A stretch of DNA of 64,000 nucleotides from Lepidodermella squamata (Eukaryota; Animalia; Gastrotricha), in the NCBI GenBank assembly GCA_047495785.1, contig JBLDXI010000017.1, positions 1,240,001 through 1,304,000 on the forward strand, given 5' to 3'. The notes below the pieces were generated by a model. That model worked only from the letters and a program-made list of their open reading frames with translations, was not told the DNA's origin and did not search any database. A program made the position numbers and the translations under genes. Position 1 is the stretch's first letter, and every line of letters begins with the position of its first letter. Positions 2,593 through 26,470 of this stretch are shown here, piece after piece.

Positions 2593-3353
2593 CTATTTGA
2601 AAGCTGATTTTTCCCAGTCGCCCAAACAGCAGCAATAGGCACACGGGTAGATGACCATTACCGGAAAGAAGAAGATCCAGATCAATCTGAAAAATGGTTC
2701 ATTTTCAAGCATATATGCATAAGCTGCATTCGATGTTTTACTTACAATTGGGCCCACCACGGCCACTGCTCGGGCTGAGGTGTAACAGTTTTCACGATAA
2801 TCGTAGCATATCGTGTAACAGCTGAAATATGGCACGAAACTAGGTAGAAATGTCAGAGATTCAAAGCTAGCATTTACTCAAGGTTGTAGGTGGAGGCGTT
2901 GTAGTCCCTGGAACGCATCTGAAAGACATTACAGGAAAATGCAAGAATGACCAATGTCTTCTGTCTTCAACTCTCACTTTCCAGGCGAAGTCCATTGCCC
3001 AGATGGCTGGCAGGCTATTGTACTGCTTCCAGATGTTATGTAGCCGTTGTTGCAATTCAGCCAACGAAGGCTTGTGACTGAATTGCCACTGTCAGCACTG
3101 AATTTTCCATTGGCAACGGTTGGAATAGCTGAATCGGGACACTGCACGGCCTGACGTCTTTGGCGAATGAAATAATCAATCTGTAAAAAGAGACTGATAC
3201 TTGCTCATCTGCAACATCAACTGAAATAGTCACATTTCCATCGCTCGTTTGTGCGTTGCGCTGATGAGCTGATGATGCATGAACGCTATGGGATATCAGC
3301 AACAGCGCTAATTTTGCTACAATCACGTTCAAATGGGTTACCGGTAGAATCAT
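2593..3353 (-). CDS. Array gene A: signal peptide + Sushi/CCP + Thr-rich stalk + TM + Cys-rich tail, with no protease domain
   Basis: The spliced reading gives MILPVTHLNVIVAKLALLLI.., then VQCPDSAIPTVANGKFS..LNCNNGYITSGSSTIACQPSGQWTSPG (Sushi C-P..G..C..G..C...W), KTVTPQPEQWPWWAQL and IWIFFFPVMVIYPCAYCCCLGDWEKSAFK*. Confidence 0.7.
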
Positions 3354-3820
3354 TTTATATTTTACATGTAAATAAATAACATGTGTTTATAACCGATATT
3401 ATTGTTGCTGTAACGGTGCGTTACTTGATCCTAAAACCTAATACCTAATTCAGACGTTCACGTTGCTGTTTACATTTTCGCATCTGTTGAGAGTTTATAT
3501 GCTACTCATCGCGGCAAAGTTGTCACAAACAAAAACATTGAGGGAAATTGTTTTCGAGCAGCTTTGGCTCCCGTTATACGAAAAAACAGTTCCGGCAACT
3601 GGAACCAGCACATTGATGAACCATAGATATGAGGGGTCACTTGCCGCGTGGAAATAACATTCTTCACTTGAAGATGGCCATTGAACTGCTTCAAAGCTTG
3701 CTTCTACGGGTTATGACTTTCATGATGATTGAAAAGACGCGTCAGAAATCGAAAATTTAATTTTACTTTATTCATAAGGCTCTTTTTCCAAAAATGATCA
3801 ATAATTATTGAGTAAAAGTT

Positions 3821-5310
3821 CTATTTAGTGGTTCCATCCGGATTGTAGTGTCGCTCCCAAGCACACACTTGACAACTATACATTATGCAGTAGGTGATGA
3901 GCGATGGAAAGAAGAGCAGGCCCATGATCAGCATAGCCCACCACGGAATTTTCTCTGGCCTGGGCGCCGCTTTGACAACACGGACTTCAACATCCTTGGC
4001 TTTAATCAAAATAGTGAAAAATCGTTATCAGCCGCGTTTAAAAGAAGCTGTAACCAACCAAATAGAGTCGTGGTTTGATCGCCTCGAATGTTAGGTCCAC
4101 GACCACCGGATGCAGTTGTAGTTGACGGAATGATGCAGTTGCCACCTAAAACCCAACCGCCATTGGTGCACGACGCGCTATTCGCTCCTTGCAGAGTGTA
4201 CCCATTGTCACATGCGATTTCTCGAACAGCGCCATTTCCGTAAGCTCCAGGCAACGCATAGCCGTTCGGAACTGTCACAATAGGATTGCAGTCATCGGCT
4301 AAACATTGGATCTATTAATCACTGAAATTGCACGTGAGAAAACAAATACCCCCAGATTGCCTAGCGACAATCTTTTTGACCGCACGAGCTGTTGCTTGAA
4401 GATCTACAGCTATCCTCTTGATCCAAGGTAAGGCTCTGCAAACATTACTGTAGACAAGAGGTTTATCAGCTTTAAGGCATTTGGTATCGCGGTAGCTCGA
4501 CACGCCACCGATGTAGTAGGTTTGAGTTGAAAAGTCGCTGCACAGCAATGCGTAACCAGGAACCTCGGAAATGCAGCTTTCGGCATCTTCGACGGATTGG
4601 CGCGATGCACATAATTCCATTGCTTTTTCAGTTGAAGCCTCCTTAATACCGCAATCAGCCAAAGTCTGTAATGAAATTGCTGATTTCTCCAACACAGATT
4701 TTGACCCATTGAAAAGGCCGCTGAATGCAAAACCGGTTGGGCGGAGGCAGATAGCGGTTGAGTTTCGGCTGTCTGCTTCCGCGTCGCATTGTTCCGCGCC
4801 GGGAAGAGCAATCGGTAGTATCTTTTCATCGAATTCAGAGATCGGTCGTGTCAGGCGAATTAAGGCTAGGTTTATGCTGCCATGCGAGGGTTTAAGCTGT
4901 GGCTCTGTCCAAATTTTAATAGAAGAGTTCCTCGTTATTGTTTGACTTTGATCTTCGGGTAAATGGGCGAATTTGACTTGGATCCTGCGTAAACACAACT
5001 TTCGAAGCTCACATTCTCATACATGGTGACAATATTACTTTGATGCGTAGTGTGAACCGTTTTTCACGCAGTTAGCAGCGGTCAATAACCATGAGCTTGA
5101 AAGTAAGGTAGCCCCACAGTCGATCACCTTAGCATTAGGGAACGTGCTTGTAATCGAAACCTGGATGTACAAGGTCATAATGTATAAATTGGCTTTTTAA
5201 TTATTATAGGTTCATACAGTCCATGGAAACTCGTTCTTCGAGATTTTCTGCAACCCGTCGGCCATTACCGCAGTTGCTAGACAAGCCGTGACCAACCAGA
5301 GCCCAGCCAT
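3821..5310 (-). CDS. Array gene B (subfamily 1): inactive trypsin-like domain + Sushi + TM + Cys tail
   Basis: Signal MAGLWLVTACLATAVMA, then EFPWT and CGATLLSSSWLLTAANC (His>Asn), INLALI, VPGYALLC; Sushi ORF 4006-4278; tail WWAMLIMGLLFFPSLITYCIMYSCQVCAWERHYNPDGTTK*. Confidence 0.8.
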
Positions 5311-5403
5311 ACAGATAAATACTCTACAGGTATAAGACAAATCATCAACGAAGCTGTAATTTATCCTTTATAGACTCTAGGTATATAGGATCATTCGAAT
5401 CAA

Positions 5404-7362
5404 TTATTTAAAGTTCGCTTTCTCCCAGTCGTTTAGACAACAGCAATAGCCGCATGGATATATCACCATCACAGGGAAGAAGAAGATCCATATCAGCCTG
5501 TAATAACGGGGAAAAAAATGAAGGTGGAAATGAACTTATTCGATAACTCACAATTGGGCCCACCACGGCCATTGTTCGGGCTGAGGTGTAACAGTTTTCA
5601 CGATGATCGTAGCGTACCTCGTTACAGCTTTAAATATCATAGGTACATTTAGGTTAAATGAAGGCTTCTAGTAATTTCTTGGAGAAACTCACTGGCGGTA
5701 GTTGGGACTACGGTTGTTGTTCCTGGCACGCACGTCCCAGGGCTAGACCATTCCCCAGACGGTTGGCATACAACAGTGCTACTGCCCGATGTTATGAAAC
5801 CGTCATTACACAATAGTTTTCGAATGCTGGTGACTGTGTTGCCGCCATCGGGGCTGAAATTGCCGTTAGCAACTTTAGGCAGTGCAGAATCCGGGCACGT
5901 AGCGCTGGTGTCTAGGCTGCGCGATTCAACAACATAGGAGGAGGCGAGTGTGGTAGATCTGGTTCGCCTGGGTGGAGTTGTTGCAGCGGTTGTTTCTGAG
6001 TGTTAATAAAAATGATCTATCAGCACTGATTTTGTTTTTAATTTTAAAATGCTTAAGCGCCCAATTCATAATTTCAATATCATAAGATACAATTTCACGA
6101 CAGGTGAAGAACTTCAGGATAGAAGTGAAATAAGAGAGATAAGAATGCCAACTCATTAGCGGGTCGAAAATGAAAGGAGGGCATTTTTATGAGTTGCGTT
6201 AGTTACCCTCGGTGATTTCCCCGTTATCGATCTCCACAGGTGGCGTTGTTGGAGCCAATGTAGGCGTAGTTCGCCTTCGTGGTGTTGTAGTGCGGGCTTG
6301 ACGTGGTCTGATTTCTGAAAACAAATGGTTGTAATACCGAACGTAGATATTTGGATGAGTCAGCAAACCTTCCATTTGAACAGCTGATTCGGGTGCCATG
6401 GTTTCTAACCCGGTAGTCCGTTGAATCCATGTCAGTACCCTGCATACTCTCGCGTATACAGCAGGCTTATCTGACGCGGCCGAGCATGCTTCGCTCTCTC
6501 CATACGAAGCGATTCCGATCAAAGTAAGATAGTCATTGCAAATCAAAGGACTTCCCGAGTTGTCCCAGCAAAAGGGCTCAGCTGAGCCTCCGGCGCAAAT
6601 CTTAGCGTCCGTAAAAGATCCAAGGCCGATGTCCGAGCATTTAGAATAGGCATTTAGGTTTTGCTTGATTTTCTTCAAACCGTCTGAAACTAGCCGCTCT
6701 TCCCCCTCGGTGCCACTTCCAATGACAAACGCAGTCTCACAAGCGTCGACGAAACCCTCCTCAGTCCCGTTGTACTCGTTGGTCATACAAGATTCTTCCG
6801 ACGGAAGGTCTATCGGACGTAGCAAAGTGTTACCCAAGGTCTTCTTATCCAGTTGAAGCAGCGCGAGGTCAAAATTCGATTTCCCGCTGCGGCCGAAGTG
6901 CGGATAAATGATGATTGATGACCGGTTGAAGATCGTGAAGCTCATTTCGGTATCGTCACCAATTTTCAGGTTAGGCTTGATCCGAACTGTTACGCTGTTA
7001 TAAAGGTGATCTCAAATCAATTTGCGAGAGATTATTATGTTTGAAAGTTTACCTCATTGCGATGACATTGTGGGGCTGTCTGACGCAATGAGCTGCGGTC
7101 AAGACCCATTGATTAGCAACCAAAACTCCGCTACATCTCAATGTATGCCAGACATTGTCGATTAAAAATAAGCTCGTGATTGAACTCTAGAATAGACTTG
7201 GTTGATAAGTTCTATCATTGCGAAGGTTCAAATTACCATAAACGAATAGTCAGTTGTCGAAGCTCGTTGCAACCGATCTCCGGAAGCATCGGAATCATAC
7301 TCGAAGGCGTAGCTCGATGCAATGATAGCCGCCCCTAACAGCAGCAATGGATCTAGGCGCAT
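5404..7362 (-). CDS. Array gene C (subfamily 2): trypsin-like domain with intact His/Asp/Ser + stalk + Sushi + TM + Cys tail
   Basis: Signal MRLDPLLLLGAAIIASSYA; CSGVLVANQWVLTAAHC; NFDLALL; CWDNSGSPLIC; PAVYARV; Sushi exon at about 5715-5900; tail IWIFFFPVMVIYPCGYCCCLNDWEKANFK*. Confidence 0.8.
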
Positions 7363-7736: not shown

Positions 7737-8899
7737 TCAGATAATAACTGTTCCATCGGGCCTGTGATGTCGCTCCCAAGCGCAAATTTGACAGCCGTAC
7801 ATGCACAGGTAGCAGAAAAGAGCTGGAACGCAGAAAATTGACATGAGGAGCAAAGCCCACCACTCGACCAATTGAGGCTTTGGAGCTCCTTTAACTACCG
7901 GCACTTCGACGTCCTTTGCTGAAAATGTGAATCATCTTATTGCGATTATTTAGATTGATAACTTTAGTTTACTTATATAAACCACTTCAGGGCCTCCTCC
8001 AGCAGCATGTTTAGCCATAGCTTTCTTGACACTGCCATTCGCCGAATTAGTTTCCCGTATATTGAACCTGATCCATTCAAGGGCGCTGCAAACCCAGCTA
8101 TATGAGAGAGGCTTGTTAGCGGTATCACACAGCTTTTCTCGATCACTTGTAATGCCACCGAAGAAATATGACCCATGCGGAGATTCCTTGCACATTAGAG
8201 CTTGTCCTTCGACTTCTGAAACACAACTTTCGTCATGGTCTAGCCGCGCAGCACAAATTTTTCCCGTGTCGTAAGTTTCAATTCCGCAGTCGTCTAGAGG
8301 TTTTAACAGCATGTTCGACGCAGTGAGAACAGCTCCGCTTCTATCGCGGCTGCTCTGAAAGCCAAGCACTGAGGGAAAGGCACAGTTATCAATGGCATCG
8401 CATTGTTTATCGCTGGGGAGTGCGATTGGCGAGACGCTCCTATCGAATCTCGAAATCGGGCGAGTGAGCCGTAATAACGCGAAGTTTAAATGACTGCTGG
8501 TCTCGTTGTTCTGCTCCTCGTCAGCGAAAATCTTTATAAAGCTGCTTCTTGAAATCATATGAACTTGATCGACCGGCGAGTTGGCGAATTGAACCTTCAC
8601 ACTAAGGCGGCATTAGAATAGAGAGCAGGTGGAAACTCCAACATACTTCGAAGCTAAGGTTGTCCCGTTATGAACACAGCGAGCTGAAGTGAGCAACCAT
8701 GCGCTGGATATTAAGGTAGCCCCGCAGTGTGACGATGCTCCGTCAGCAAAAGTCGAAGTTATCCAAGCCTGTTGATAATGAAAGCCATGATATCTGCAAC
8801 TTGTTTTCGACTATATTTTACCGTCCATGGAAACTCGACAGCTCCTTCAGACATCGCAATATCGGGAAGGATGGCCAGTATCAGCCACAACGCAGACAT
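7737..8899 (-). CDS. Array gene D (subfamily 1): inactive trypsin-like domain + TM + Cys tail (no Sushi)
   Basis: Signal MSALWLILAILPDIAMS; EFPWT; CGATLISSAWLLTSARC; ORF 7950-8600; last exon EWWALLLMSIFCVPALFCYLCMYGCQICAWERHHRPDGTVII*. Confidence 0.8.
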
Positions 8900-9028
8900 T
8901 GAGATTAACTTGAAACCTATAACTACGAATAAAAGCCTTTCAAATTTGAATTAGGTAATGTTATCGCTTTTAGAGTTTTGACAAACTTCAGTTCAAAATA
9001 GCAGGGAGTTAAAAAGTTTCTGTTAAAG

Positions 9029-11400
9029 TTATTTTCTAAATTGAGCAGCCTCCCATTGATCGATACAGCAGGAGTAACAACATGGGTAGAAACACATGAC
9101 TGGGAAGAAAAAAATCCAAATCAGCCTGAAATTATAAAATTTTATGAATTGATAAGATTTACTCACGAAGAGTGACTTACATCTGAACCCACCACGCCCT
9201 AAAGAGTATAAAAATATGAATTTAATTTACTGAGTATTTACAATTAATTACCATTGTTCAGGTTGCGGCTGAATCGTCTTAGTGATCTTAGTCACCATTC
9301 TAGTCACAACTGAATGTAAAGCAATGTAATATCCACGTACATCTCCCGATGAAACCGATAGGACTTACCTACGGTGATAGCAGGTGGTGGTGTGACGGCT
9401 GAACTTGGAACCTGTTTCAAGCATGATTGGCCAGTAAATTGAAGATAATGCTTGTAGCAAAAACAAACGCAAGCTCCAGAAGTTGACCATTGGCCTGTTG
9501 ATTGGCAAACGATGAAGGGGTTCCCAACCAGAACGAAACCGTTCGTGCAAGTCAACGTTCTGATGCTTGACGCGGTATTTCCACCCGAGCTGAATAGGCC
9601 ATTCGGAATAGCTGGAATCATGCCATCGTAACACGTTACATCGTCAACGACAAGATCGCGAGGAGCAGGGGGTTCGTGTGTTCGGCGTCTTGTTGTTTTC
9701 TTGGGCACTGAAGACATCGATTCATTGAAAAAAGAGGTAAATGTATTTGAGAATGCGAATTACCTTCGTAATCGTCTTCAAGATCACGAGGAGGAGTGGT
9801 AGGAGGGCCTCGGCGTCTTTTGGTTGTCTTAGGCGCTGGAGAAATCGATTAAATTACAAAGAAGCTACTGAATTTGAAAACGCGACTTACTTTCAATGTC
9901 GTCTTCTAGATCACGAGGAGGAACGGTGGGGGTGCCTCGGCGTTTTATGGTTGTTTCGGTTGCTGGAAGTCGATTATATTAAAGAGAAGCAGATGAATTT
10001 GATAGCACGACTTACCTTCGTTGTCATCTTCGAGATCACGAGGAGGAATGGTTGGAGTGCCTCGACGTTTTTTTGTTGTCTCAGGTGCTAGAAAAATTGA
10101 TTAAATTACAAAGCAGCTAATGAATTTGAGAACATGACTTACCTTCGGTGTCGTCTTCAAGATCACGAAGAGGAGTGCTTGGAGGGCCTTGGCGTCTTGT
10201 ACGTGCGGTTGTAATGGGCTCGGGTTCTTGGGAATCAATTCAAATAAGGATGAGTAAAATTTGACAACACAACTTGCCATTGGTCTCGTCATCAAGGTCT
10301 CGAGGGCCAACCGTCGGGGTTGCGCGACGTTTCAGTGTAGTTCTTCCGGTTGTAATTAGTTCACTTCCTTGATGATTCGATGTATGCGTAAAAGAGAGGA
10401 ATGTGAGAGTGCGACCTACCGTTGGTTTTGGCAACTTCTGCTCAAGAAAACGTCGTTGAAATTATTTGAACTACTAATCATATAAGCAAACCTTCCATTT
10501 GCAAAGCCTGAAGAGGGTTTGTAAGACCAGTTATTCGCCGAATCCAGGTTAGTACGCGGCATATCCTGGCGTAGACGTAAACAGCCGGTTTGCCGGGCAA
10601 GCACTCATCGTTTTCTCCATATGACGCGATTCCAAGCAGCGATTTAGTGTTCTCGCTAACCAAGGGACTCCCGGCATTCGCCTTTATACTACAGAATGGC
10701 TCAGTCACTTCTCCAACACATAATTTCGTGTCAGAGGAATATTCCAGGTCACATTCTGAATAAGCTTTGAGCTGAAGATTCAACTTATTCAAGTTCCCAT
10801 CTGCATCGATGATTAAGGAAAATTGTTCCTCGGGAGCCTCATCTCCGCCCTTTATCGAACACGATCCGCCGTCGGGCAGGCTTATAGTTTCAAGCTCAGT
10901 TCCATACAGGCTATCTCTGCCTAAATCGATTAGAGCAAAATCGAAGTTGTATTTACCATTCCTGCCAAAGTGAGGATGAATGATGATTGATGATTTGCCG
11001 GCGACTTGAATCGTCTTTGAAAGGAAACCAAGCTGAACAGTAGCACTAGAAAACGATTGAGAATACAGTAATAGCCAAGGGGATTGTAGATGTACTTCGA
11101 GGCAACGATGTTATTGTTATTTCGGAGGCAATGGGCCGCTGTCAATAACCAGTGATCACCAATGAGAACGCCGCTGCATTTTACTTTTTCCCGCAAGTCG
11201 CCAACACGAAACACACTGCTTACGGTTGCCTGGTGACAAAAAGCTAGCATATCAAGTAATTGGAACGTTAACTCGATCCGAACCAAGTAAGGATATTCGC
11301 TGAAGGCAGATTTCACTGTAATGACGTCGACAGAGAAAACCAAAGCGACAAGCGATGCAACAAATATCGATGAAAGAAAATTGCTTCTATTACCAATCAT
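9029..11400 (-). CDS. Array gene E (subfamily 2): trypsin-like domain (Ser>Ala) + repeated stalk exons + Sushi + TM + Cys tail
   Basis: Signal MIGNRSNFLSSIFVASLVALVFS; WLLTAAHC, NFDFALI, ANAGSPL; tandem stalk exons at 9764-10360; Sushi at about 9470-9640; tail IWIFFFPVMCFYPCCYSCCIDQWEAAQFRK*. Confidence 0.8.
9764..10226 (-). repeat. Tandem 126-bp exon+intron units encoding the stalk of gene E
   Basis: Splice donors recur at a 126-bp period (about 9763, 9889, 10015, 10141). Each exon encodes xPxTT(K/R)RRGxPxxPPRDLEDDxE. Confidence 0.8.
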
Positions 11401-12357
11401 CTCACATATAGTCAAAAACATTTAATAAACATAATTTTAAACTTGTTTCGACCCAAGCTTTATACCCTTCGCCAATGTACCGGTATAAATAAATAGGGAT
11501 CCATTTAGCTCGTGTTTTCGAAAACAAAGATGCCTAGGCAGGCAAACTTTTGCGATTTCGCATGGTTAGAATTTTGGCTCCCAAATAATTGCCGTGGCCC
11601 AGGTTCGAAATTTTTACATGTATACTGTAACCGAACGTGGACGCTACCCGAGTGATATCATGTATTTTATCTTCCACATTAAAATAAACAAAAACAGCGC
11701 ATAGGTAAACAGGCAGGACCTCATAATACGACACTTTGGTTATAATTAACCCTTGCGCCTCGTTTGAGACACTTTGCGCCACTGCGAGAGGTGACTCGCG
11801 GCTCAACATAAAAATGGCTTTAAGATTTACGCATTTATATAATAGGATAAGTAGGATGTGCTTGAATTGGCCACTATCTGAAGAGCTTGCGGTGCTTCAT
11901 GATACAACAATTGTCCCTAGGAGAACAAGCAAAAGCTGTCATAGCTGCTGATTTTACTTCCAACCCCCGCTTTTATGTGTTTAGCTCGCCAGGCTTTCAA
12001 CTAAGTGCCAATCGCCTGAAATTTGATGGAGATTTGATGCGATTTCAACGAACATATTCTTACCTTGACCGAAAGAGTTTCAAGTTTCGGCTGCTTTGAA
12101 ATTGAGGTTGTCGTTAGGAAGTCAGTTACAATATCTCAAATATCAAAGCCCTTTCGCGAAAACTCAAATGCCATTGTAAACATAAAGCAAAGACTCTTTA
12201 GGTTGCGAGCGCGCATGTGTTACAGTGCCCCAGATTTCGCGACCACGCGATTTATTTGTACTTCAACTTTTTTTATTAGAAATCAATAAGCCGATCAGAT
12301 CGGTGCCAAACTTCGCATGCAATTTTTTACAAATAACGTTTCAGGATACTGATTTAT

Positions 12358-13532
12358 TTAGAGGAGAGTTCCATCCGCCTTGTGATGTCGCTCCCAAGCG
12401 CACATTTGACAGCCGTACATTATCGCGTAGCAGGCGAGCGCAGGAAGGCAGAGCAGGCCCATGATCAGCATAGCCCACCACTCGATCAATTGAGGCTTTG
12501 GAGCTCCTTTAGTTACCTCAACTTCGACGTCCTTTGCTGTTGAGAAAAATTTATACATCACGTATCGTACAGCGCTCATAAAATGGCTCACTTATAATGG
12601 GCCCACCAGAGGCTTCCTTAGCTACTACAGCCTTCTTCACATTACCATTAGCTGCCGGATTGACTTGCCGTATAGTAGACCTAATCCAGTGCAAAGCATT
12701 GCATAGCCAATTGTAAGACAACGGCTTATTAGTAGTATCGCAGAGTTTGTCCCGATCACCAGCAATCCCACCGAAGAAGTATGTTCCATGTGGAGATTCC
12801 TTGCACAAGAGAGCTTGGCCTTTAACTTCTGAGATGCAGTCCTCGGCGTGCTCCTGCCGCGCAGCACAAAGGTTCAAAATATTGCCTGACTCATCCAGTT
12901 GAATGTTGCATTCCTCCAGGGGTTTTAATAACATTTCTGACGTGACAACGGTCTCGCCATTTCGACCCCGCATACTCTTAAAGCCGGTCGTCTCGGGAAA
13001 GGCACAGTTATCAATGGCCTCACATTGCTTATCGCTCGGGAGGGCAATAGGTGAAATTGCCTTATCGAATCGAGAAATCGAACGCGCAAGATGTAGCAGT
13101 GCGAAATCAATGTGACTTTTTGAGCCGTTGTTTTGCTGATCCTCGGCAAAAATCTTAATGGAACTACTTTTCGAAATCGTGCGATATTGTTCAACCGGTG
13201 AGTTGACGAATCGGATCTTCACGCTATACCGTATACACAGTCAATGATGGTTAGATTCAGGGGTTCAACACACTTGAGAGCGGGAGATGTTCCGTTATGA
13301 ACGCAGCTAGCGGAAGTAAGCAGCCAGGCGCTGGAGATTAAGGTAGCGCCACAGTGAAAGGACGCGCCATCTGCAAAGGACGATGTTATCCAGGCCTGTG
13401 TGTAAAAATATGCGATTAATGTATATTATTTTATCATGATCAAGATCTTACTGTCCATGGAAACACTGCGACTCCTTCGGATATCACCATGCTTGGTAGG
13501 GTGGCTACACTGATCAGCCATAACACATCCAT
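12358..13532 (-). CDS. Array gene F (subfamily 1): inactive trypsin-like domain + TM + Cys tail
   Basis: Signal MDVLWLISVATLPSMVIS; VFPWT; WLLTSASC; HIDFALL; EVKGQALLC; tail EWWAMLIMGLLCLPALACYAIMYGCQMCAWERHHKADGTLL*. Confidence 0.8.
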
Positions 13533-13675
13533 TAAAGCTAAAATGAATCCTAAGATAGTGTATTTAAATGTCTAGCAATTAATATCTGTTCGGTTTATAC
13601 AGCTTTTAGAGTTTCAAAAAACTTCGTTTCCCACTGAAGCCTTCACTTTAAAATTTAAATGTTAGGTGTAGCAGT

Positions 13676-15936
13676 TTATTTTTTGAACTGAGTAGTTTCC
13701 CATGTATCGAGGTTGCAGGCGTAACAGCATGGATAGATAAGCATGACTGGGAAGAAGAAAATCCAAATCAGCCTGAAACGGAATTATTTTAGGTTCTTTA
13801 AGATTCGCTAAACCATTCACTTACAATTGAACCCACCACGGCCTTCAAGGAAAATAAACATGTTATATAACCATAAATAGATTACAACATGCACAAATTT
13901 ACCATTGTTCAGGCTGTGGCGCTATCGTTCTAGTGATTTTAGTCACCGTTCTAGTCACAACTGAAAGCAAGGCAATGTAATTACCACGTAAGTTTCTCTG
14001 TGTAACTAGGTCTTACCCATGGCAGTTGATGGTGAGGTAGGTGGTTCTGTGGCGGCTGAATTTTGCACCTATAGTAGGCATCGACCAATAAAATGACGAA
14101 AATACTTGTGGGGAAAACAAACGCAAGATCCAGGACTAGACCATTGACCGGCTTGTTGGCATACCATGTAAGAGTTTCCAACCAAAACGAAACCGTTTGT
14201 GCAAGTCAAAGTTCTGACGCTTGCGATAGTGTTTGTACCCGAACTGAATACTCCATTCGGAATAACTGGAATCATGCTATCTGAACATTGCACATCATCC
14301 ACTAGGTCACGTGGAGCAGCCGTTGGCGGCCTTCTTGTGGTCAGTCTGGTCGCCGGCTCTTGTATTCCGAATTACATAGATGTCGAAAAAACAATTTCAC
14401 AGCTAAATTTACCTTTAGTCGACTCATTTTCTGCTCAAAAAATGTGTTAAAAGATTGCTCAAAAGATTGAACAATCCTCTTAGAAAACTCGTTGACTTTT
14501 TTCAGAAATTTTTTTCATTAAGTTTCCTCTCTGGTTGATCTGATCTCTATGCACGTAAGTTTCTCAGTGTAACTAGGTCTTACCTATGGCAGGTGGTGCT
14601 GTGGCAGCTGAATTTTGCACCTATAGTAGGCGTCGAGCAATAAAATGACGAAAATATTTGTGGGGAAAACAAACGCAAGATCCAGGACTTGACCATTGAC
14701 CGGTTGTTTGGCACACCATGTAAGAGTTTCCAACCAAAACGAAACCGTTTGTGCAAGTCAAAGTTCTGACGCTTGCGACAGTGTTTGTACCAGAACTGAA
14801 TACTCCATTCGGAATAACTGGAATCATTCTATCTAAACATTGCACATCATCAGCCGATGCAGCCTTTGGTAGTGATGGCCATCTTCTTGCGGGCTGTCCG
14901 ACTGGCGCGGGTTCTTAAGTTCGGATTTACGTAGATAATATACGCATCATAATTACTCAGCTATACTTACCTTTGGTCGACTCATTTTCTACTCGAAAAA
15001 TGTGTTAATGATACCATTGAGTAATAATGAAACAAAGCAACCTTCCATGTGCAGTGCTCGAAGTGGGTCAGCAAGACCGGTTACTCGGCGAATCCAGCTA
15101 AGAACACGACAAATCCTCGCGTAGACGTAAACGCCTGGTTTTCCTGTCGAACACGTCTCGCTTAGCCGATGAGAAGCGATCCCAAACAGAGATTTTGTAA
15201 CAACGCCAATCAATGGACTACCGACATTTCCATCCCTACAAAAGGGCGACGTCACTTCACCAACGCATAATTTCGCGTCAGACGACGGTTCCAAACCGCA
15301 ATCCAAGTGAGCTTTGATCTTGATATTTGATTCACTCGGCATCCCAGCTTCATCGATTGCAACAGCAAATGCTTCATCGGGGCTTGTCGAGCATGATTCT
15401 GCAGTTGGTAGGCTTAATTTCGCAAGCTGACTTCCAAACTTGCCATCCCGACCCAAGTTTAGCAGAGCGAAATCAAAATTGTATTCACCACCCCTGCCAA
15501 AATGTGGATGAATGATGATTGATGATTTGCCTATAACTTCAATTGTCTTGGATAGGAGCCCGAATGCAACAATAGCGCTAAAAAGGTTCAACATACAAAA
15601 GCAGCGAAGGAGGTTTAAATATTACTTGCTGGCAGTGGTGTGATTATCATTTCGAAGACAACGAGCCGCAGTCAATAACCAGTGATCACTGATAAGAACG
15701 CCCATACATTCAACTTTTTCAAACTTGCTACCAACAGGTATCACACTTTTAACGTTCGCCTGGTTGGATTGTCAGTAAATGATAAATAAATCAAACACGG
15801 ATGTGAATTTTATTCGAACCAAATAGGAGAATTCGCTGAAGGCTGGATTGACCGGAATGACGTCGAGAGCGGCGCCCAGGGTGATGAGTGACGCGGCTAA
15901 TAAATTAGAAGGAAACAAATTGCTTCGAATATCCAT
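13676..15936 (-). CDS. Array gene G (subfamily 2): inactive trypsin-like domain + two Sushi domains + TM + Cys tail
   Basis: Signal MDIRSNLFPSNLLAASLITLGAA; WLLTAARC; NFDFALL; GNVGSPL; near-identical Sushi exons in ORFs 14621-14845 and 14069-14302; tail IWIFFFPVMLIYPCCYACNLDTWETTQFKK*. Confidence 0.8.
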
Positions 15937-16905: not shown

Positions 16906-16993
16906 ACGCGGAATTTCCACCCGAGCTGAATACGGGATTCGGTGTCAGTTCATATTCGGCGCTTCTTACGTGATCATTCCATACAAGTAACAT

Positions 16994-17051
<58 letters not shown>

Positions 17052-18011
17052 TAATGAGCATGATATCCAGGAAGGAAGCTCGACAGTGAAAAAAGAAAGT
17101 GCAGCCGCAGCAGAGTAGTCAGAGTGCCATGGTGGTATCAGTTCCGTTTCAGGTTTCCGGTGAATTATTTTATGATTTTTGAATTATTAGAAAAGCGAAT
17201 GGTTTTTTCAGGAGTTCCAGGTAAGTTTGTTGGCGGCAGCTATTAGCCGAGATAGCACTTTGCGCATCAGTGGAAAGATTGTTGAATAGTATCGCCCCTC
17301 GATACGTCGATATTTGACAACACGACTTGCCATTGGTCTCGTCATCAAGGTCTCGAGGGCCAACCGTCGGGGTTGCGCGACGTTTCAGTGTAGTTCGTCC
17401 AGTTGTAATTAGTTCACTTCCTTGATGATTCGATGTATGCGTAAAAGAGAGGAATATCATGAGGGTGCGACTTACCGTTGGTCTTGGCAACGTCTACTCA
17501 AGAAAACGCCATTGAAATTAGGTGATATTCTAGTCATATAAGCAAACCTTCCTTTTGCAAAGCCTGAAGAGGGTTTGTAAGACCAGTTATTCGCCGAATC
17601 CAGGTTAAAACTCGGCATATCCGGGCGTAAACGTAAACAGCCGGTTTGCCGGGCAAACACTCATCGTTTTGTCCATATGACGCGATTCCAAGCAGCGATT
17701 TAGTGTTCTCGCTAACCAAGGGACTCCCGGCATTCGCCTTTATACTACAGAATGGCTCAGTGACTTCTCCAACGCAAAATTTCATGTCAGAGGAAGAATC
17801 CAGGTCACATTCTGAGTAAGCTTTGAGCTGAAGATTCAATTTATTCAAGTTCCCATCTGCATCGATGAATACGGCAAATTGCTCCTCGGCACCCTCATCT
17901 CCACCTTTAGCCGAGCACGATCCCCCATCAGGAATGCTGATACTAGTTTCAAGCGGGGCTCCTTCCCTGCCTAAATCGAGTAGAGCGAAATCGAAGTTGT
18001 ATTTGCCATTC
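16906..18011 (-). pseudogene. Array gene H: truncated copy of gene E
   Basis: 17312-18011 closely matches E 10260-10961, and a Sushi-exon remnant at 16906-16942 matches about 9569-9606. The 5' exons are replaced by the MULE, while E-like promoter sequence resumes at 20261. Confidence 0.75.
16997..17051. repeat. (ATT)n microsatellite, about 17 units
   Basis: Read directly from the sequence. Confidence 0.95.
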
Positions 18012-20260
18012 AACTGTGTTGGGGATTTGATTTTTCAGATTTTGATTATCACGATTTTAGACCGTTTTGGGCTGTGATTTCATTTGAAGGGATTGATTTG
18101 AAAGAATCAAGATTTGATTGGCGCAAAAAACTTGATTTAAGGGATTCCAAAATCAAAAACATCGTGGGAAAATAGCGATCCGTATGTGCAAACTGCCGGG
18201 AGGATGAGAAGATTCCAGGAATTTTTCTATTTTTCCAGGAAGTCGTTGTCTGACGAAGTTATTCAAATGATAAGAAATGGTTTCAATCTGGCTAATATTT
18301 CCGGGCTTAAAGCCATGATGCAACACATCGAACGAGCATTTGCTGACCTTGGCCGCGCACATGAATATTTCCTCGTGAAAAAACACGCAGTCAAATACCA
18401 ACTTGAAAAGCTGAAAAATGCCGGGCGGGTGGCTAACTATAAATTGTAAGATTTGATCGATTTTCACGAGACATTCAAAAAAATCGCCGGTGATGATCAA
18501 GCGTTTTCCCTCGCCGTTGAGACTTCGCCCGAAACAGCTACCCAAACCCAGAGTTTTGGGATCGTGTTATCAACCCCGAGACTTATCCGGCACCTGGGGC
18601 ATGGTGGTCCCGTACACATAGACGGCACCTACAAGCTGAATTGGTCCGGCTTTCCAGTGTTGGTTATGGGTACAAGCGACAAGGAACGCAAATTTCACCC
18701 TGTTGCGGTGCCGTTACTGGAGGAGAGAGGCGGGAAGATTACCGTTTTGTCTTGAAGAGTGTGAAGGATGCTTATCTGCGAGTGTGCGGTAAGTGTGGCG
18801 CTTAATCCTCCTTAATATCGTTAACTCCACTTCATTATAGGTGTAGAGCAACCTAAGCCGCCTGTTGTCGTGCGCGATGGTGCGCCGGCTATAGCAGGTG
18901 CTATCGAGGACGTGTACGGCGCGGACGTTCTGTAGCAAATGTGTTACGCGCATGTTATACGTAATTGCGACACTCGTCTCAAATTGTAGCCTCAGGCCAT
19001 GAGCGCGCGCATGCGAAGTGATATTGGTTGCCTCCAGCTGGCCCGTTCGAGGGACATGTTCGATGAGTTCAAACCCCAATTTATCGCTCATTGGGCTGGA
19101 ATCCCAGAAGCCGAGGCTTTCTTGCTGTATTTCCATTCCGAGTGGCTTGACAACAAATGGCAAAATACTTGGTTTGAAGGGTACGCCCCAGGCTACCCTT
19201 CAACCAACAACGGCAACGAGTCCTACAACGAGGTCATAAAGAGAGACTTCTCTTCTCGGCACCGCATGCCCCTCGACAAGCCGCTGCCCCTTATCCGTAA
19301 CGAGATTTTGCCGTCATGGAGTCGTGATCGTCACCCTGACAATGTGAACTGCATCACCTATTCGAAACATGTTCTCTGGACTCATAGTGATTGGTGCAGC
19401 GGGTTGCCGTGGTCCGAGAAGCATATTACCTACATCACCTCCTCAATCCTCAAACGTTGGCGATTGGCTGAAAGTGCGGCTTTTCGTTTTTGACATGCTC
19501 GAGTGCTCGTGCAGTCGATATCAAAAGGTTGGGGTTTGTCGCCATTCCATTGGCATGGCCATTCGCCTGAAGCTGGTCACTGTTCCTACCAACGTTCTGA
19601 ACAGTCAGGTTGTCCAGAAAAAGCGTAAACGCGGCCGTCCTACTCTGGCTCAACGGGCTCTGCTCATGCAGAATGTGGAAAAGGCACCCAGCCCTGATCG
19701 CGAGTCGCTGGACAGTGATATTGGCGACACGGGTGGTGAACAATTCGAGCAACAAGACGATTATTTCGAAGAGTTGGTTGAGCCCGCGCCGGAGCTTTTT
19801 CCTACCCTGAGTGAGCCTGTTACCGGTCCAGCAACCATAGAGAACGACTTAGAGGTCGACGGTCGTGTTGCTCGAGGCGGCCGCGGTACTCGTGTTGGTC
19901 GCGGTACTCGACGCGGCCGTGGTGCTCGAGGCGGTCAAATCGCAGTTGAAGGTGAAGTCGAGACGCCAAAACCACGCCGAGGAAGGCCACCGCTGACCCG
20001 AAGCGTTTCAGCAGTTCCGCCCACAACAGCGCCGGCACCAAAACCGCAACGCGGCAGACGAGGGCGAAAATGCTGTTTTACTTAAATTTCATGATTTCAT
20101 GAATTTATTGATGTGATGTGTTGATGAATAAAATTTGGTTCCGCAAAAGTGAATTTAACATGGAAATATTATTTAAAAATTAAATCCAAAATTTGGTTCC
20201 GCTTACAGGCAAATTTGGTTCCGCAACAGTTAAATTTGGTTCCGCTAAAAGTAAGACCCA
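18012..20260 (+). mobile_element. Decayed Mutator-like (MULE) DNA transposon with SWIM zinc finger
   Basis: Broken ORFs carry HIDGTYKLNWSGFPVLVMG (first catalytic Asp region), STNNGNESYN (Glu region), CSCSRYQKVGVCRHS (SWIM) and KRKRGRP. They contain stops and frameshifts. Four AAATTTGGTTCCGC subterminal repeats lie at 20130-20246. Confidence 0.85.
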
Positions 20261-21059
20261 TTTTAAAACTTGTTTCGGCCCAAGCTTTATATCCCCGCCA
20301 ATGTACCGGTATAAATAAATAGGGATACATTTAGCTCGTGTTTTCGAAAACAAAGCAGTCTGGGCAAGCAATCTTTTGCGATTTCACTTGGTTAAAATGT
20401 TGGCTTCCAGTTAATTGCCGCGGCCCAGGTTCGGCATTTTTATATGCATACTGTAACCGAACGTGGACGCTACCCGAGTGATATCATGTATTTTATCTTC
20501 CACGTTAAAATAAACAAAAACAGCATAGGTTAAACAGGCAGGCCCTCATAATACGACACTTGGGTTATAATTAACCCTTGCGCCTCGTTTGAGACACTTG
20601 GCGCCACTGTGAGATGTGACTCGCGGCTCAACATAAATAGCTTCGAGATTTTTGGACGCTGAGTTATAAATTAGGATAAAAGTAGTACGTGTTTGAGTGA
20701 CCACTAGCTGGTCAGCGATCTCGTACTTCACGATACAACAATTGTCCCTGGGAGAAAAACCATGTAATAGTTTATTTGACTGTCGATTGGCCGCTGTTAG
20801 GTGTTTTACTTCCTTGAGCGATTCCAACGTAACATATTCTTACCTAGACATCAGTGCCCCAGATTACGCGAGCACGCATCTCGATTCGCGATTTATTTTT
20901 ACTTTTACAAATTTTTTATCAGAAATTAACAAGCCGATCTGATCGGTGCCGAACTTTGCATTCAATTGTTTACAAATAATGTTTCATGACGTTGATTTAT
21001 TTTTTTGATTTCACTATATAAAGTTAACATTACATAAAAATCGACATTATATACGACAT

Positions 21060-22242
21060 CTAGATGACAGTACCATCCGGCCTGTGATGTCGCTCCCAAG
21101 CGCAAAGTTGACAACCGTACATGCACAGGTAGCAGAAAAGAGCTGGAGCGCAGAAAATGGACATGATAAGCATAGCCCACCACTCGACCATTTGAGGCTT
21201 TGGGGCTCCTTTTGTTACCTCAACTTCGGTGTCCTTAACTGTTGAGAAAAGTTGATGCATTACAGATAATAATTGCTCACTCTTACAATGGCTTACATAT
21301 AATGGGCACACCCGCAGGAGCGCTTGCAGCTTCCTTAGCTACTACAGCCTTCTTCACATTACCATTAGCTGTCGGATTGACTTGCCGTATAGTAGACCTA
21401 ATCCATTGCAAGGCATTGCATAGCCAATTGTAAGACAACGGCTTATTAGTAGTATCGCAAAGCTTATCCCGATCACCAGCAATCCCACCGAAGAAGTACG
21501 TTCCATGTGGAGATTCCTTGCACAAGAGAGCTTGGCCTTGAACTTCTGAAATGCAGCCCTCGACGTGCTCCTGCCGCGCAGCACAAAGGTTCAAAATATT
21601 GCCTGAATCATCCAGTTGAATGTTGCATTCCTCCAGGGGTTTTAATAACATTTCTGACGTGACAACGGTCTCTCCATTTCGACCCCGGGTACTCTTGAAG
21701 CCAGTAGCCTCGGGAAAGGCACAATTATCAATGGCCTCACATTGCTTATCGCTCGGGAGGGCAATAGGTGAAATTGCCTTATCGAATCGAGAAATCGAAC
21801 GCGCAAGACGCAGCAAGGCGAAGTCAAGTTGGCTGCTTGAGCCGTTGTTTTGCTGATCCTCGGCAAAAACCTTAATGGAACTGCTTTTCGAAATCGTGCG
21901 ATATTGATCTACAGGTGCATTGGCGAATTGAACCTTCACGCTACACCGTATGTATGCAGACAATGAAGAATAGGTTCATAGGTCCAACTCACTTGACAGC
22001 GGGAGATGATGCATTATAAACGCAGCTAGCCGAGGTAAGAAGCCAGGCGCTGGAGATTAAGGTAGCGCCACAGTGTGAGGAAGAGCCATCAGCAAAGGAC
22101 GATGTGATCCAGGCCTGCAGGCAAAGTGTTTATGCGAATAAAGTTCGTAATTTCGTATTACCGTCCATGGAAACACTGCGACTCCTTCAGATTGCACCAA
22201 ATTGATTAGGGTGGCTACAGTGAGCAGCCACAACGCAGCCAT
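21060..22242 (-). CDS. Array gene I (subfamily 1): inactive trypsin-like domain + TM + Cys tail
   Basis: Signal MAALWLLTVATLINLVQS; WLLTSASC; ORF 21283-21963 is nearly identical to F; tail EWWAMLIMSIFCAPALFCYLCMYGCQLCAWERHHRPDGTVI*. Confidence 0.8.
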
Positions 22243-22381
22243 TAAAGCTAAAAACCTAAGACGGAATAATAACATTTCTAGCTGGTAAAAGCTGTTCACG
22301 GCAATGGGTTTTATCAGCGTTTAGAGTTTCGAAAACCTTCATTTTTCTACAATAATTCATTTACAATTAAGGTGTAGCAGT

Positions 22382-24080
22382 TTATTTTTTGAACTGAGTA
22401 GTTTCCCATGTATCGATGCAGCAGGAGTAGCAGCATGGGTAGAAACACATGATTGGGAAGAAGAAAATCCAAATCAGTCTGAAAAGACATTTTTACGAAC
22501 TTTTTAAAATTTACTCCTCAATTCACTTACAGCTGAACCCACCACGCCCTGCGAAACGCAAATATACTTTAAATACATCGTTCTACATATTATTTACACA
22601 TATTTACCATTGTTCAGGCTGCGCTTGGATGGTTTTAGTGATCTTGGTTACTGTTCTGGCCACAACTAGAGGAAAGGCAGTTCGTATATAATGTCAGCCC
22701 CTCTATGAAATCATGACAAACCTATTGGTGTTGGTGGAGGAGGTGGAGCCTGGTTTTGAACCTGAAAAAAACGAAATAAGAAACGATTTAGGTTTGGCAT
22801 CAAAACAAACGCAAGTTCCGGGACTTGACCATTGACCTGTTGATTGGCATACAATGAAACCATTTCCAACCACAACGAAACCGCTATAGCAATTAAGAAT
22901 CCTTATGCTTGCTACTTGTGTTGCGCCCGGACTGAATGCTCCATTCGGAATAACTGGAATCATGCTATCGTAACATTGCACATCATCCACTAGGTCACGT
23001 GGAGCAGCCGTTGGCCGCCTTCTTGTGGTCCGTCTGGTTGTCGGCTCTTGTATTCCGAATGACATTGATGACAGACTATAAATTCTCAGCAAAACTTACC
23101 GTCGGTCACCTCAGCTTCTGCTCAAAAATAAGTGTAATGATACCATCGAGTAATGAATGATAAAACAAAGCAACCTTCCATGTGCAGTGCTCGAAGTGGG
23201 TCAGCAAGACCGGTTACTCGGCGAATCCAATTGAGAACACGGCAAATCCTCGCGTAGACGTAAACGCCTGGTTTTCCCGTCGAGCACGTCTCGCTTAGCC
23301 GATGCGAAGCGATGCCAAACAGAGATTTTGCATCCACGCCAATCAAAGGACTGCCGACATTCTCATCCTTACAGAAGGGCGAGGCCACTTCACCAGCGCA
23401 TAATTTTGCGTCAGACGTCGCTTCCAAACCGCAATCTAAGTGAGCTTTGATCTTGATATTTGATTCACTCGGTATCCCTGCATCATCAATTGCAACAGCA
23501 AATGCTTCATCGGGGCTTGTCGAGCATGATTCAACTGTTGGTAAGCTGATTTTTGCGAGCTGACTTCCAAACTGGTTCTCACGGCCCAAGTCCAGCAAAG
23601 CGAAATCGAAGTTGTAATCACCGCCCCTGCCAAAATGTGGATGAATGATGATTGATGATTTGCCAGCGACTTGGATCGTCTTCGTGAGGAAACCGAATGC
23701 AACAGTAGCGCTGAATAGGTTAGAAAATGTTAGAAATCGTAAAAGCAGGGGAGGAGGTTCAAGTATTACTTGCTGGCGGTGGTGTGATTATCATTTCGAA
23801 GGCAACGAGCCGCAGTCAATAACCAGTGATCACTGATAAGAACGCCCATACATTCAACTTTTTCCAACTTGCCATCAACTGGTATCACACTTTTCACGCT
23901 CGCCTGGTTGGATAGTCAGTAAATGATAAATAAATCAAACACGGATGTGAATTTTATTCGAACCAAATAGGAGAAATCGCTGAATTCTGGATTAACTGGG
24001 ATGGTGTCGAGAGCCGCACCCAAGGTGATGAGGGATGCGGCTAATAAACAATAAGGAAACAATATGCTTCGACTATCCAT
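22382..24080 (-). CDS. Array gene J (subfamily 2): inactive trypsin-like domain + Sushi + TM + Cys tail
   Basis: Signal MDSRSILFPYCLLAASLITLGAA; WLLTAARC; ENVGSPL; Sushi in ORF 22703-23092; tail IWIFFFPIMCFYPCCYSCCIDTWETTQFKK*. Confidence 0.8.
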
Positions 24081-24995
24081 CGCGTCAAGTCTAACCAAAA
24101 ATAATGTTCGCTAAATGTCGCGGCTAATTTGGAGTTGGCGCAAAACAGGGGTTTTATACCCTCCCTTTGTACCGGTATCAGTAAATACGAATGTAATCAG
24201 CTCGTGCTTTCGAAAACAAACATGGATCTCATATGCACCGATTTGTTTAGGGAGCAAGTATTTTGCGGCCTGTGATGTTAGCCGCAGCCCTAATGCTTGT
24301 GGCTGCCCCCAGTTGGGGAACATTGAGATAACTTGTGTCATCGCATGTAATAAGTCTCACCTTTAAATTGGATACAAACAAGCGGATGTGTAAACATATA
24401 CTCTGAAGCATTGCGGGCGACAGCTTGTGATATAAATAGCTCACATTAAGCGTTCCGCGCAATAACTTGGTAAATGAGCGAAACAGCGCAAAAAAACTTG
24501 GCCAAATGAACAGTGGAGCAAACATGTTTTTGTGAAGCTGAAGCGGGCACTTAGGACAGTAATTCGGTGTAATCGATGGGTTGCCACCTGAATCCTGAAT
24601 ACTGAACTTTCACTTTTACTGAGCTGAGATCGAAACTTGATAAAATAACCCGACATGCAGTCAGAGATGTCTCATACGCAACCGAAGAAGGTTCGGAAAA
24701 CTAAACTGTAGGACAGGGTGTTAAGCCCGACCTTATTGTCTGGGATGTTACCAGCGCCATGAAATCGCTATTCAGCTGTGGAAATGCCGATGGGAATGGA
24801 AAATCCGGGATATGCTTTTCCTCACCAGGAAAAATGCATGGCTTTCGAGCCGTTTTCACCGTCATGCTTATCGCATCTGGATTGCTTCTGGAATTTTGGA
24901 AAATCAGTTAAAGATATATTTGAACTGTTTAGTAATCCACAAAGTTGATGTTTCACTATTATTTTTTATTTATTTCTATTCAGCAAGATATGTTA

Positions 24996-26470
24996 TTACT
25001 TTGAGCAGCATTTGTCAAAGCCGCCGCAAAAGTAAACGATACCCAGAATAATTAGAACCCACAAAATCGAGCCAGAAACGATAATCCAAGGCAGGTCGTT
25101 GTAGGTCGGCCCGAACTCAGGTGGGCCATCAGCCGCCGCTTTAGCCTCGCCGCTTTTCGGGGCCGTCGCCTCGTGAACCGATTCGGGTTGAACAACTTCC
25201 GGAGGCGGGCGATTTTCCAGCTGTCGCAGTTTATTTGCCTGCTGATTTTGCGTCAAGCCGCTTTTAGGAGGTTCGCTAGCCACGCATCGGCCGGCTTTCG
25301 ACCAAGTTCCATTCGCTTGGCATGTTATGTATTCACTTCCTTGAGCGAGTCGATACCCATCGTTGCACTCAATTTGACGAACTGATCCAGGTGTCGCTTC
25401 GCCCGGCTTTACTGAACCATTCGAAATAGTCGGATTAGCTGCACAACCCTCATCTGAAAAATTTCGTTTAAATATCGAATAATCGATGTAAATATTTCTA
25501 CCTTGACTGAATTGCTTGACTGCTGCGGCTGCTTTGAAATTGAGGCTATCGTTAGGCGGCGGGATGTCGCTAACAACGTCTTGAATCCAGTTCGAAACAC
25601 GGCAAATTCGCCCGAAAACTAATGGCTTTTCAGGTTCGTGGCAAGCCGGAGCTCGATGGCTTGAAACCCCAATCAAATAATAGGACGTCGACCTGGAATC
25701 CTTACAAATCAAAGGATGCCCGGGCGTTTCGGCCAGGCAAGTTATTTCAGGATCAGCCACGCGACTAACGCATAGTTTTTGATAGTCACTCGCCCTTTTC
25801 CCGCCATCGCACGTGTTGAACGGTTGGAAATTAACGGGCGATTTTTTCAGAATTTTCGCCGCGGTTTGCACGCCATCTGTCGCGAGAGCAATAGCGTTGG
25901 AACACGAGGCGGCTTGGTGCTGTTGTTGTTGGCAAATCGCTTGGTTCGGCATTAGAAGGGGCTGAACTTTCGCGAGAGATTTCGGTAGTTTGATCAGTGC
26001 GAAATCGTAATTATCTCCGACTAGACTTCGGCTCCGGCCGAAATCTGGGTGAATTGTGATTGAGGAAACGTTAACATTGATTCCGCTTTGACCAGTCTGG
26101 CCAGGAATTTTCACAGTCACTCTGGAACCAAATTGCTCGTATTAGCTTTAAATTGTATAATGAGGAGACTTACGTGTTAGCAGTCGATTTTCCCTTTCGG
26201 ATGCAATGACCTGCAGTAATTAGCCAGGTCGGTGAAATTGAGGTCGCACCGCATTCGAGCTTGGATGAATCCCCCTCAAAGCTGGTCGAAATGTCAACCT
26301 ATAAATAATTGGCAAATAATAATTCCTGCTATTTGAGGCAATTTTAACTATTTTACCAGCCAAGGAAACTCGTCGTGATCGATTGGTTGTAACCTGGTGG
26401 GTGATTCACCGGTCAAACACGTGCGGCCGGTCAATATAATACAAATCAGCAATGCTAGGTTTTTTCTCAT
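24996..26470 (-). CDS. Array gene K (divergent member): inactive trypsin-like domain + Sushi + stalk + TM
   Basis: Signal MRKNLALLICIILTG; DEFPWL; WLITAGHC; NYDFALI; ETPGHPLIC (Ser>Pro); Sushi CAANPTISNG..CNDGY..CQANGTW; TM LPWIIVSGSILWVLIILGIVYFC; ends DKCCSK*. Confidence 0.8.

Follow-up and report, generated by a model that had tools for sequence, protein, structure and literature searches.

A tandem family of putative membrane-anchored S1 pseudoproteases with Sushi domains and a conserved cysteine-rich tail in the gastrotrich Lepidodermella squamata

Introduction

Catalytically dead domains of the chymotrypsin-like peptidase family S1 act as binding modules in haptoglobin, HGF/MSP, and the serine protease homologues (SPHs) of arthropods, and S1 pseudoproteases such as haptoglobin, HGF, and the insect SPHs are known as soluble binders. 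Haptoglobin further combines a complement control protein (CCP, or Sushi) domain with S1, the CCP coming first, and this secreted protein is still cleaved at an activation-like site. Here we describe an array of eleven tandem gene units on the minus strand (26470-2593) of a 64,000-nt stretch of the genome of the gastrotrich Lepidodermella squamata (contig C17, JBLDXI010000017.1, positions 1240001-1304000; hereafter the window), which probably encodes lineage-specific, non-catalytic type I surface binding proteins with a pseudoprotease head and a probably palmitoylated transmembrane (TM) anchor. The array resembles haptoglobin, HGF/MSP, protein Z, and azurocidin in having a chymotrypsin fold without a working triad, which these proteins use for binding, and it differs from haptoglobin, in which the CCP precedes S1 and which is secreted.

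C-terminal membrane anchoring of S1 proteases is also known, as the vertebrate transmembrane tryptase gamma and the glycosylphosphatidylinositol-linked prostasin and testisin carry, like the array proteins, an extracellular S1 domain with a C-terminal anchor (PMC8199346); unlike them, these enzymes are active, possess an IVGG-type site, and have neither Sushi domains nor a Cys-cluster tail of this kind. The combination of Sushi/CCP with S1 is shared with C1r/C1s/MASP, factor B, Limulus factor C, and the insect Sushi-SP/SPH "polypeptidases," soluble proteins in which, in contrast to the array, each S1 domain is preceded by Sushi domains located in the pro-region and the cleavage sites are of the L|IVGG type (PMC11172050). 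Moreover, insects hold many S1 homologues without a triad (PMC11172050; PMC1761132). The terms "serine protease" and "trypsin" are absent from the Lepidodermella squamata assembly paper (PMC11660948), and the array would add to a very thin molecular picture of gastrotrichs.

Materials and Methods

The array was delimited by self-comparison of all open frames in the window, and genome searches covered the 121.2 Mb assembly of 151 contigs. Introns were placed by frame-keeping GT..AG pairs at equal positions in the paralogues, by DNA alignment of the 3′ parts, and by reading of the junctions. Joined exons were used locally for frame and hydropathy checks only, and all database searches were made with single exons.

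Results

Gene Models and Domain Layout

The open-frame comparison revealed a repeated set of minus-strand frames spanning 2.6-26.5 kb, which corresponds to the eleven units A to K (Table 1). Intact models from ATG to stop were obtained for ten of them (A, B, C, E, F, G, H, I, J, and K), with 56 introns of 45-225 nt, 55 of which are GT-AG and one, in gene G, GC-AG. Nine genes (A, B, C, E, F, G, H, I, and J) share the layout of a signal peptide, an S1 domain, 0-2 Sushi domains, one TM helix, and a short Cys-rich tail; a preliminary description of the locus had extended this layout to eleven paralogs, which holds for these nine and fails for D, which is broken, and for K, which has no S1 domain. 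By hydropathy, every one of the ten models begins with a hydrophobic leader and has, close to its C-terminus, a single hydrophobic 19-mer with a Cys cluster behind it; this segment is the only hydrophobic one besides the leader, with S1, where present, upstream of it. The predicted topology of the S1-bearing models is that of an S1 ectodomain followed by a C-terminal TM, and not that shown by type II transmembrane serine proteases, which have an N-terminal signal anchor and a C-terminal S1 domain. Pfam Trypsin (PF00089) matched in ten units and Pfam Sushi (PF00084) in eight domains. The type I membrane family of S1 head, Sushi, and juxtamembrane Cys cluster proposed in the preliminary description is supported by Pfam, intact models, and hydropathy; its further elements, namely an S1 domain without an IVGG activation site, 0-2 Sushi domains C-terminal to S1, and a clustered-Cys tail after the TM, were likewise recovered, as detailed below.

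Predicted Loss of Catalytic Function in the S1 Heads

The Trypsin profile matched the large exon (exon 3) of all ten S1-bearing units over profile positions ~50-220, six of them above the cut-off of 20.6 (26-67 bits) and four just under it (18.4-20.5), and a reading frame of gene G exon 1-2 that covers exon 2 matched positions 22-50. A profile search of the PDB gave plasma kallikrein, enteropeptidase, and similar generic S1 enzymes at ~70 bits, and specific closeness to the haptoglobin group was not found in it.

Alignment of exons 2 and 3 revealed that the catalytic triad is incomplete in nine of the ten S1 domains and complete in gene I only. The Ser195 position is occupied by Ser in I, Pro in A, Ala in D and G, and Val in B, C, E, F, H, and J. 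The His57 position is His in A, G, and I, Arg in B (TAARC), E, and H, Ser in C (TSASC) and F, and Asn in J (TAANC), and Asp102 is replaced by Asn in H and J, with A and G retaining both His and Asp. Position 194 is never Asp, being Asn, Glu, or Thr in all array copies. Furthermore, no I-x-G-G activation site was found in any array S1 copy, as the leader is followed by FPW(T/L) within only ~7-15 residues; in active relatives an FPW-type motif lies ~9 residues past I-x-G-G, an in-genome example being SK|IYGG-x7-EFPWM (SK|IYGGVYAQPAEFPWM, together with GDSGGP). The array thus does not show the attributes of an active and zymogen-activated S1 peptidase, that is, the triad together with an IVGG terminus that pairs with Asp194.

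Given the loss of the triad in nine of ten domains, the absence of I-x-G-G, and a position 194 that is never Asp, the array heads are, as judged from their sequences, S1 pseudoproteases, a point that the preliminary description had missed, and the array proteins probably bind rather than cut. Gene I keeps His57 (TAAHC), Asp102 (FDLALL), and Ser195 (DNSGSP), yet Gly193 is changed to Asp and Asp194 to Asn, and its product would therefore be an unconventional enzyme at best.

Transmembrane Anchor and Cysteine-Rich Tail

Two types of tail alternate along the array, type 1 in B, E, G, I, and K, with the broken unit D counted among them, and type 2 in C, F, H, and J. Type 1 proteins end in ...PEQW[PA]WW[AV]Q[LM]LIWIFFFPxMxxYPCxYxC[CN]..WE...F[KR]K, with I and K finishing in ...FK, and type 2 proteins in ...WWAxLxM....P.L..Y..MY.CQxCAWERH.... 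The Cys clusters quoted in the preliminary description were found behind the C-terminal 19-mer, with PCCYSCC and CxMYGCQxC standing at the end of the hydrophobic segment. When both types are aligned, a common spacing of P, Y, C, Y, C, and WE becomes visible, and the type 2 tail profile weakly detects a type 1 tail. The Cys cluster is followed by the conserved W-E motif and then by only ~10-16 residues. Juxtamembrane cysteines are typical sites of S-acylation, and by analogy the cytosolic Cys cluster is probably S-palmitoylated. A match of the type 2 tail to the Sprouty Cys-rich domain (18.8 bits against a cut-off of 25) was taken as compositional, and neither KKXX nor PDZ motifs are conserved at the C-terminus from copy to copy.

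The anchor is more similar between copies than the head. Among type 2 genes, identity is 60-90% in TM and tail vs. 38-64% in the head (90% vs. 64% for H-C, 60% vs. 38% for J-C), and among type 1 genes it is 63-84% vs. 45-61% (84% vs. 61% for G-B, 63% vs. 45% for I-B), from which the head appears to evolve faster than TM and tail.

Sushi Modules and Exon Structure

The eight Sushi domains scored 25.6-43.2 bits (cut-off 20.7) and are distributed as one each in A, B, G, I, J, and K and two in E, with none in C, F, and H; the four Cys and the invariant Trp of this module of ~60 residues are visible in the extracted domains. On the coding strand every Sushi exon is found 3′ of the S1 exons, and the CCP-before-S1 order of haptoglobin and complement proteins is not found.

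The nine S1-bearing genes share intron positions and phases, with a phase 0 intron past FPWT and a phase 2 intron past the His loop. In type 1 genes, an 18-nt micro-exon directly after S1 is followed by linker mini-exons of phase 1-1 (five in gene G), by a module that consists of a linker-plus-Sushi exon and a Pro-rich stalk exon (present twice in gene E), and by a pre-TM exon, with a second 18-nt micro-exon that stands alone in B, E, and G and in I and K forms one exon with the pre-TM sequence. The linkers are rich in Arg/Lys, TTxKRRG being repeated five times in gene G, and the strict furin motif R-x-[KR]-R occurs once in G, once in K, and nowhere else in the models. Tandem Repeats Finder detected the linker region of gene G as an array with a 127-bp period (Table 1), each unit being one linker mini-exon of 72-84 nt (TTxKRRGTPTxPPRDLEDDxE) plus one intron of 53-56 nt with a phase 1 GTAAGT donor.

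From the stop codon of a type 1 gene to the ATG of its type 2 neighbor there are only 93-143 nt (gaps 22275-22382, 13532-13676, 8899-9029, and 5310-5404), and a conserved motif (GAAACTCTAAA.GC..ATAA) is present in three of these four gaps. An operon reading of such short gaps is disfavored by the TATA-like motif that most genes have for themselves and by the AATAAA at the upstream stop in B and E. Because TATA-like motifs lie ~35-85 nt 5′ of nine of the ten ATGs (the match of gene H is weak) and AATAAA overlaps the stop codon in genes B and E, the neighbors are more likely separate, very compact genes with their own promoters.

Duplication History and Selection

The exon 3 tree consists of (I,((B,E),(D,G))) and (A,(J,(H,(C,F)))) with 99-100% support, gene A being sister to the type 2 clade (99/95). 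The type 1 and type 2 trees are mirror images, I corresponding to J, G to H, and B,E to C,F, and this congruence, together with the alternating order, shows that the unit of duplication was a gene pair, one of type 1 and one of type 2. The introns shared by A, type 1, and type 2, where active relatives have a single-exon domain, and the shared tail pattern argue for one origin of all three. The locus cleanly illustrates the duplication of gene pairs, that of a 127-bp exon-intron unit, and conserved 18-nt micro-exons in a small-intron genome.

The ratio of nonsynonymous to synonymous substitution rates (dN/dS; Nei-Gojobori method) in S1 exon 3 is 0.18 for B-E, 0.22 for C-F, 0.24 for B-G, and 0.30 for D-G, and exon 3 identity reaches 87% between E and B and 90% between F and C. 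Values of 0.18-0.30 indicate purifying selection on the recent pairs and not gene-wide diversification, so that the rapid diversification supposed in the preliminary description is not supported, although the head does change faster than TM and tail.

Two units are incomplete. Exon 3 of unit D still scores 197 bits against the family profile, and its extended match contains three TGA codons; the synonymous distance to gene G (dS) is 0.31. Leader, Sushi, and TM exons are absent from D, and tail exons were not found in tail profile searches. A mosaic of dispersed repeats stands in place of its exons 1-2, and the G-like region upstream resumes at 20183-20670. More than 20 contigs carry copies of the first 170 nt of the mosaic at 75-90% identity, further pieces have matches on contigs C11 and C74 (74-94%), overall matches to many other contigs range over 73-94%, and a search of the open frames in the mosaic gave no Pfam domain. 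Gene K has a tail 87% identical to that of gene I and looks like a truncated duplicate of it.

Distribution and Relatives

In the genome, the exon 3 profile of the family gave 196-300 bits on the ten units of the window only, the next S1 genes scoring no more than 106 bits, and the tail profiles detected nothing beyond the array except one marginal match on contig C9 (17.5 bits, E = 0.67). Against 1.84 billion representative proteins the array profile retrieved ~10,000 S1 proteins with single-domain scores up to ~95 bits. A homologous-protein search of public collections gave no match with gene A exon 3 and two weak generic matches with the exon 3 profile. No named family was matched in these profile and homology searches, in agreement with the preliminary description, which had recognized none.

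The relatives of most similar layout lie in a cluster on contig C54 (L001, G000:C54:2455500-2464500; 2.456-2.462 Mb), where three genes for active membrane-anchored S1 proteases were read. The one with the full layout has an exon for leader plus Sushi and then, in one exon, IYGG, the full triad, Sushi, a Ser/Thr stalk, TM, and the tail VYFCSPDCDGFYIK; its active S1 domain scores 176 bits, and its tail resembles that of gene A. The second lacks the C-terminal Sushi, and the third lacks a TM in the frame read. Like the array, these genes place S1 before Sushi, a Ser/Thr-rich stalk, one TM, and a short Cys tail (VYFCSPDCDGFYIK vs. VYFCGGFDKCCSK in gene A); unlike it, they have a Sushi exon at the N-terminus, an activation site that reads I-Y-G-G, the complete triad (GDSGGP), and a single-exon S1 domain, and they reach 86-104 bits against the array profile, compared with 196-300 bits for array members.

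Outside this genome, the most array-like sequences are metagenome proteins. P0087 resembles the array in that a leader is followed by HEFPWTV without IVGG and the triad is dead (LTALEC, GDVGAP), with 15 Sushi domains after S1, and P0078 likewise has a dead S1 domain without IVGG (HEFPWMV, TTANC, GDAGDP). Neither has, in contrast to the array, a TM with a Cys tail of this kind, and both are 36-38% identical to their best loci in this genome, which lie outside the array. In P0064, S1 is active and accompanied by ankyrin repeats, and at the C-terminus of the protein a hydrophobic stretch is followed by a short tail that differs from those of the array. In the tree, P0087, P0078, and P0064 fall with the array in a group that is not resolved.

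An odd combination of a dead protease head with a protease-inhibitor module was also seen. Two loci, L002 (1835-3304, plus strand) and L003 (1738-3174, plus strand), carry a very divergent S1-like domain, at 100 bits against the array profile and without a Pfam Trypsin match, followed by C-terminal Kunitz/BPTI inhibitor domains, and metagenome sequence P0132 joins a Trypsin domain (Ser195 to Trp) to Kunitz.

The order of S1 and then Sushi is unusual elsewhere and common in this genome. Apart from the array, it is found in the C54 genes (Sushi, S1, Sushi, stalk, TM), in a 713-aa frame with S1 and then several Sushi domains, and, followed by long ankyrin arrays in one frame like those of P0064, at L007 (C17:2151000-2156500), L008 (C13:1520000-1525500), and L009 (C59:102500-107000). 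A protein search with the active in-genome relative gave generic S1 proteins of no more than 38% identity, none with S1 and then Sushi, and the order was absent among its best 120 named relatives; in insects, the Sushi domains precede S1 inside the pro-region (PMC11172050). The preliminary description had called the order atypical, which stands with respect to insects and these 120 relatives and not for this genome, where it is common, and C-terminally anchored S1 proteases as such are known (PMC8199346).

Discussion

We consider it probable that the array encodes non-catalytic type I surface binding proteins of this lineage. The sequences show the domain makeup, the signals of topology, the loss of the triad, uninterrupted frames, purifying selection, confinement to one locus, and congruent duplication of the two types; surface localization, ligand binding via the former substrate cleft, palmitoylation, and a partnership of type 1 and type 2 are inferred. 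The ancestor would most likely have been a membrane-anchored active S1 protease of the kind still found in the genome (Sushi, S1, Sushi, stalk, TM, Cys tail). The I-x-G-G site may have been lost together with the pro-region that holds it, as may Asp194 and, in all copies but one of ten, His57 and/or Ser195, and the family would later have grown by repeated duplication of the unit of a type 1 and then a type 2 gene. In the present proteins the head would be carried on 0-2 Sushi domains and Thr/Pro/Arg-rich stalk exons, with one TM helix as an anchor, and it may bind ligands through the former substrate cleft, as in other dead S1 domains. The very short tail would signal, if at all, via a partner, possibly the product of the adjoining gene. 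The roles in immunity, host interaction, or gamete recognition that the preliminary description suggested are conjectural.

It is unlikely that at least gene I, and perhaps A and G, encode working membrane-anchored proteases (sheddases or activators) with an unconventional mode of activation. The triad motifs of gene I, its Trypsin score of 67 bits, which is the best in the array, the active type of the nearest in-genome relatives of like layout, and the existence of active C-terminally anchored S1 proteases (PMC8199346) speak for such enzymes; however, His57 and/or Ser195 are gone in nine of the ten S1 domains, the I-x-G-G terminus and Asp194 are gone in all, and gene I itself has Asp in place of the oxyanion-hole Gly193. 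The membrane form might alternatively be a precursor, from which ectodomains are released as soluble decoys or cofactors in the manner of haptoglobin or arthropod SPHs. Known dead S1 proteins are mostly soluble, and the Arg/Lys-rich type 1 linkers with the fivefold TTxKRRG of gene G would suit such a release, to which may be added that the nearest protein-atlas cluster is "haptoglobin-like," at a value of 0.83 that is below the reliable range; this assignment was set aside, the PDB profile search having given no backing. On the contrary, the strict furin motif is confined to single sites in G and K, the type 2 genes have no such linker, and conservation is highest in TM and tail, an argument for the importance of the anchored form, and we regard release as having a low probability. 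That the array consists of functionless, decaying duplicates of a protease gene is very improbable. Catalytic residues are indeed lost, unit D is disrupted by repeats, gene K lacks S1, and no expression evidence was found, but ten of the eleven units retain complete frames over up to 14 exons including 18-nt micro-exons, dN/dS is 0.18-0.30, and the Cys and tail motif are conserved.

Several points weigh against surface binding proteins as we propose them. The evidence for them is genomic sequence; exon-based searches of public collections gave no matching protein, and the joining of S1 to TM exons rests on frames, splice signals, and conservation among paralogues. Gene I, which has kept its triad, might be an enzyme. 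An AlphaFold2 model of its exon 3 (ten-row alignment; a partial domain without exons 1-2) reached a predicted local distance difference test (pLDDT) score of 34, and a sister relationship of types 1 and 2 is not resolved in the tree.

As a speculative and rather improbable extension of the surface-binding reading, the adjoining type 1 and type 2 proteins, duplicated together, may form heteromeric surface receptors, in which the dead heads would recognize proteins or peptides such as microbial or self ligands or protease inhibitors, and the TM and WE tails, conserved and acylated, would link both to a common partner. If true, this would be a previously unknown receptor system made from the trypsin fold in a poorly studied phylum, and another way in which animals recycle this fold for recognition. 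No prior description of a tandem family of membrane-anchored S1 pseudoproteases with Sushi spacers and a conserved Cys-rich anchor was found in the literature searched. The array has no bearing on a long-standing open question.

Table 1. Units of the array and associated repeats (window positions; tails are those of the gene models).
Feature	Position	Strand	Exons	Protein (aa)	Description
Gene A	24996..26470	-	3	454	Leader, S1, one Sushi, TM, tail VYFCGGFDKCCSK; Trypsin and Sushi Pfam matches on exon 3; GT-AG introns of 58 and 52 nt
Gene B (type 1)	22382..24080	-	9	417	Leader, dead S1, linker, one Sushi, Pro-rich stalk, TM, tail PCCYSCCIDTWETTQFKK
Gene C (type 2)	21060..22275	-	4	352	Leader, dead S1, TM, tail CMYGCQLCAWERHH...; no Sushi
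Dispersed-repeat mosaic	18040..20190				2.15 kb, in place of unit D exons 1-2
Unit D	17173..18034	-			Broken gene G copy; S1 exon 3 and first linker mini-exon only
Gene E (type 1)	13676..15936	-	11	513	B-like, two Sushi modules
Gene F (type 2)	12358..13532	-	4	337	No Sushi
Gene G (type 1)	9029..11421	-	14	562	S1, five linker mini-exons, one Sushi, TM, tail; one GC-AG intron
Tandem array in gene G	9682..10198	-			Period 127 bp, 4.1 copies
Gene H (type 2)	7737..8899	-	4	336	No Sushi
Gene I (type 1)	5404..7362	-	7	488	S1, one Sushi, TM, tail
Gene J (type 2)	3821..5310	-	5	422	Dead S1, one Sushi, TM, tail
Gene K	2593..3353	-	5	177	Leader, Sushi, stalk, TM, type 1 tail; no S1

Other Features of the Window

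At 16999-17051, in the interval from unit D to gene E, there is a perfect (TTA)17.7 microsatellite. The array is flanked by two long plus-strand open frames, 497-1840 (447 aa) and 27196-28353 (385 aa), neither of which has a Pfam match. A second tandem family of six related open frames is located at 51317-61020 on the plus strand, and the two examined carry a cytidylyltransferase-like domain (PF01467) at 88-98 bits.

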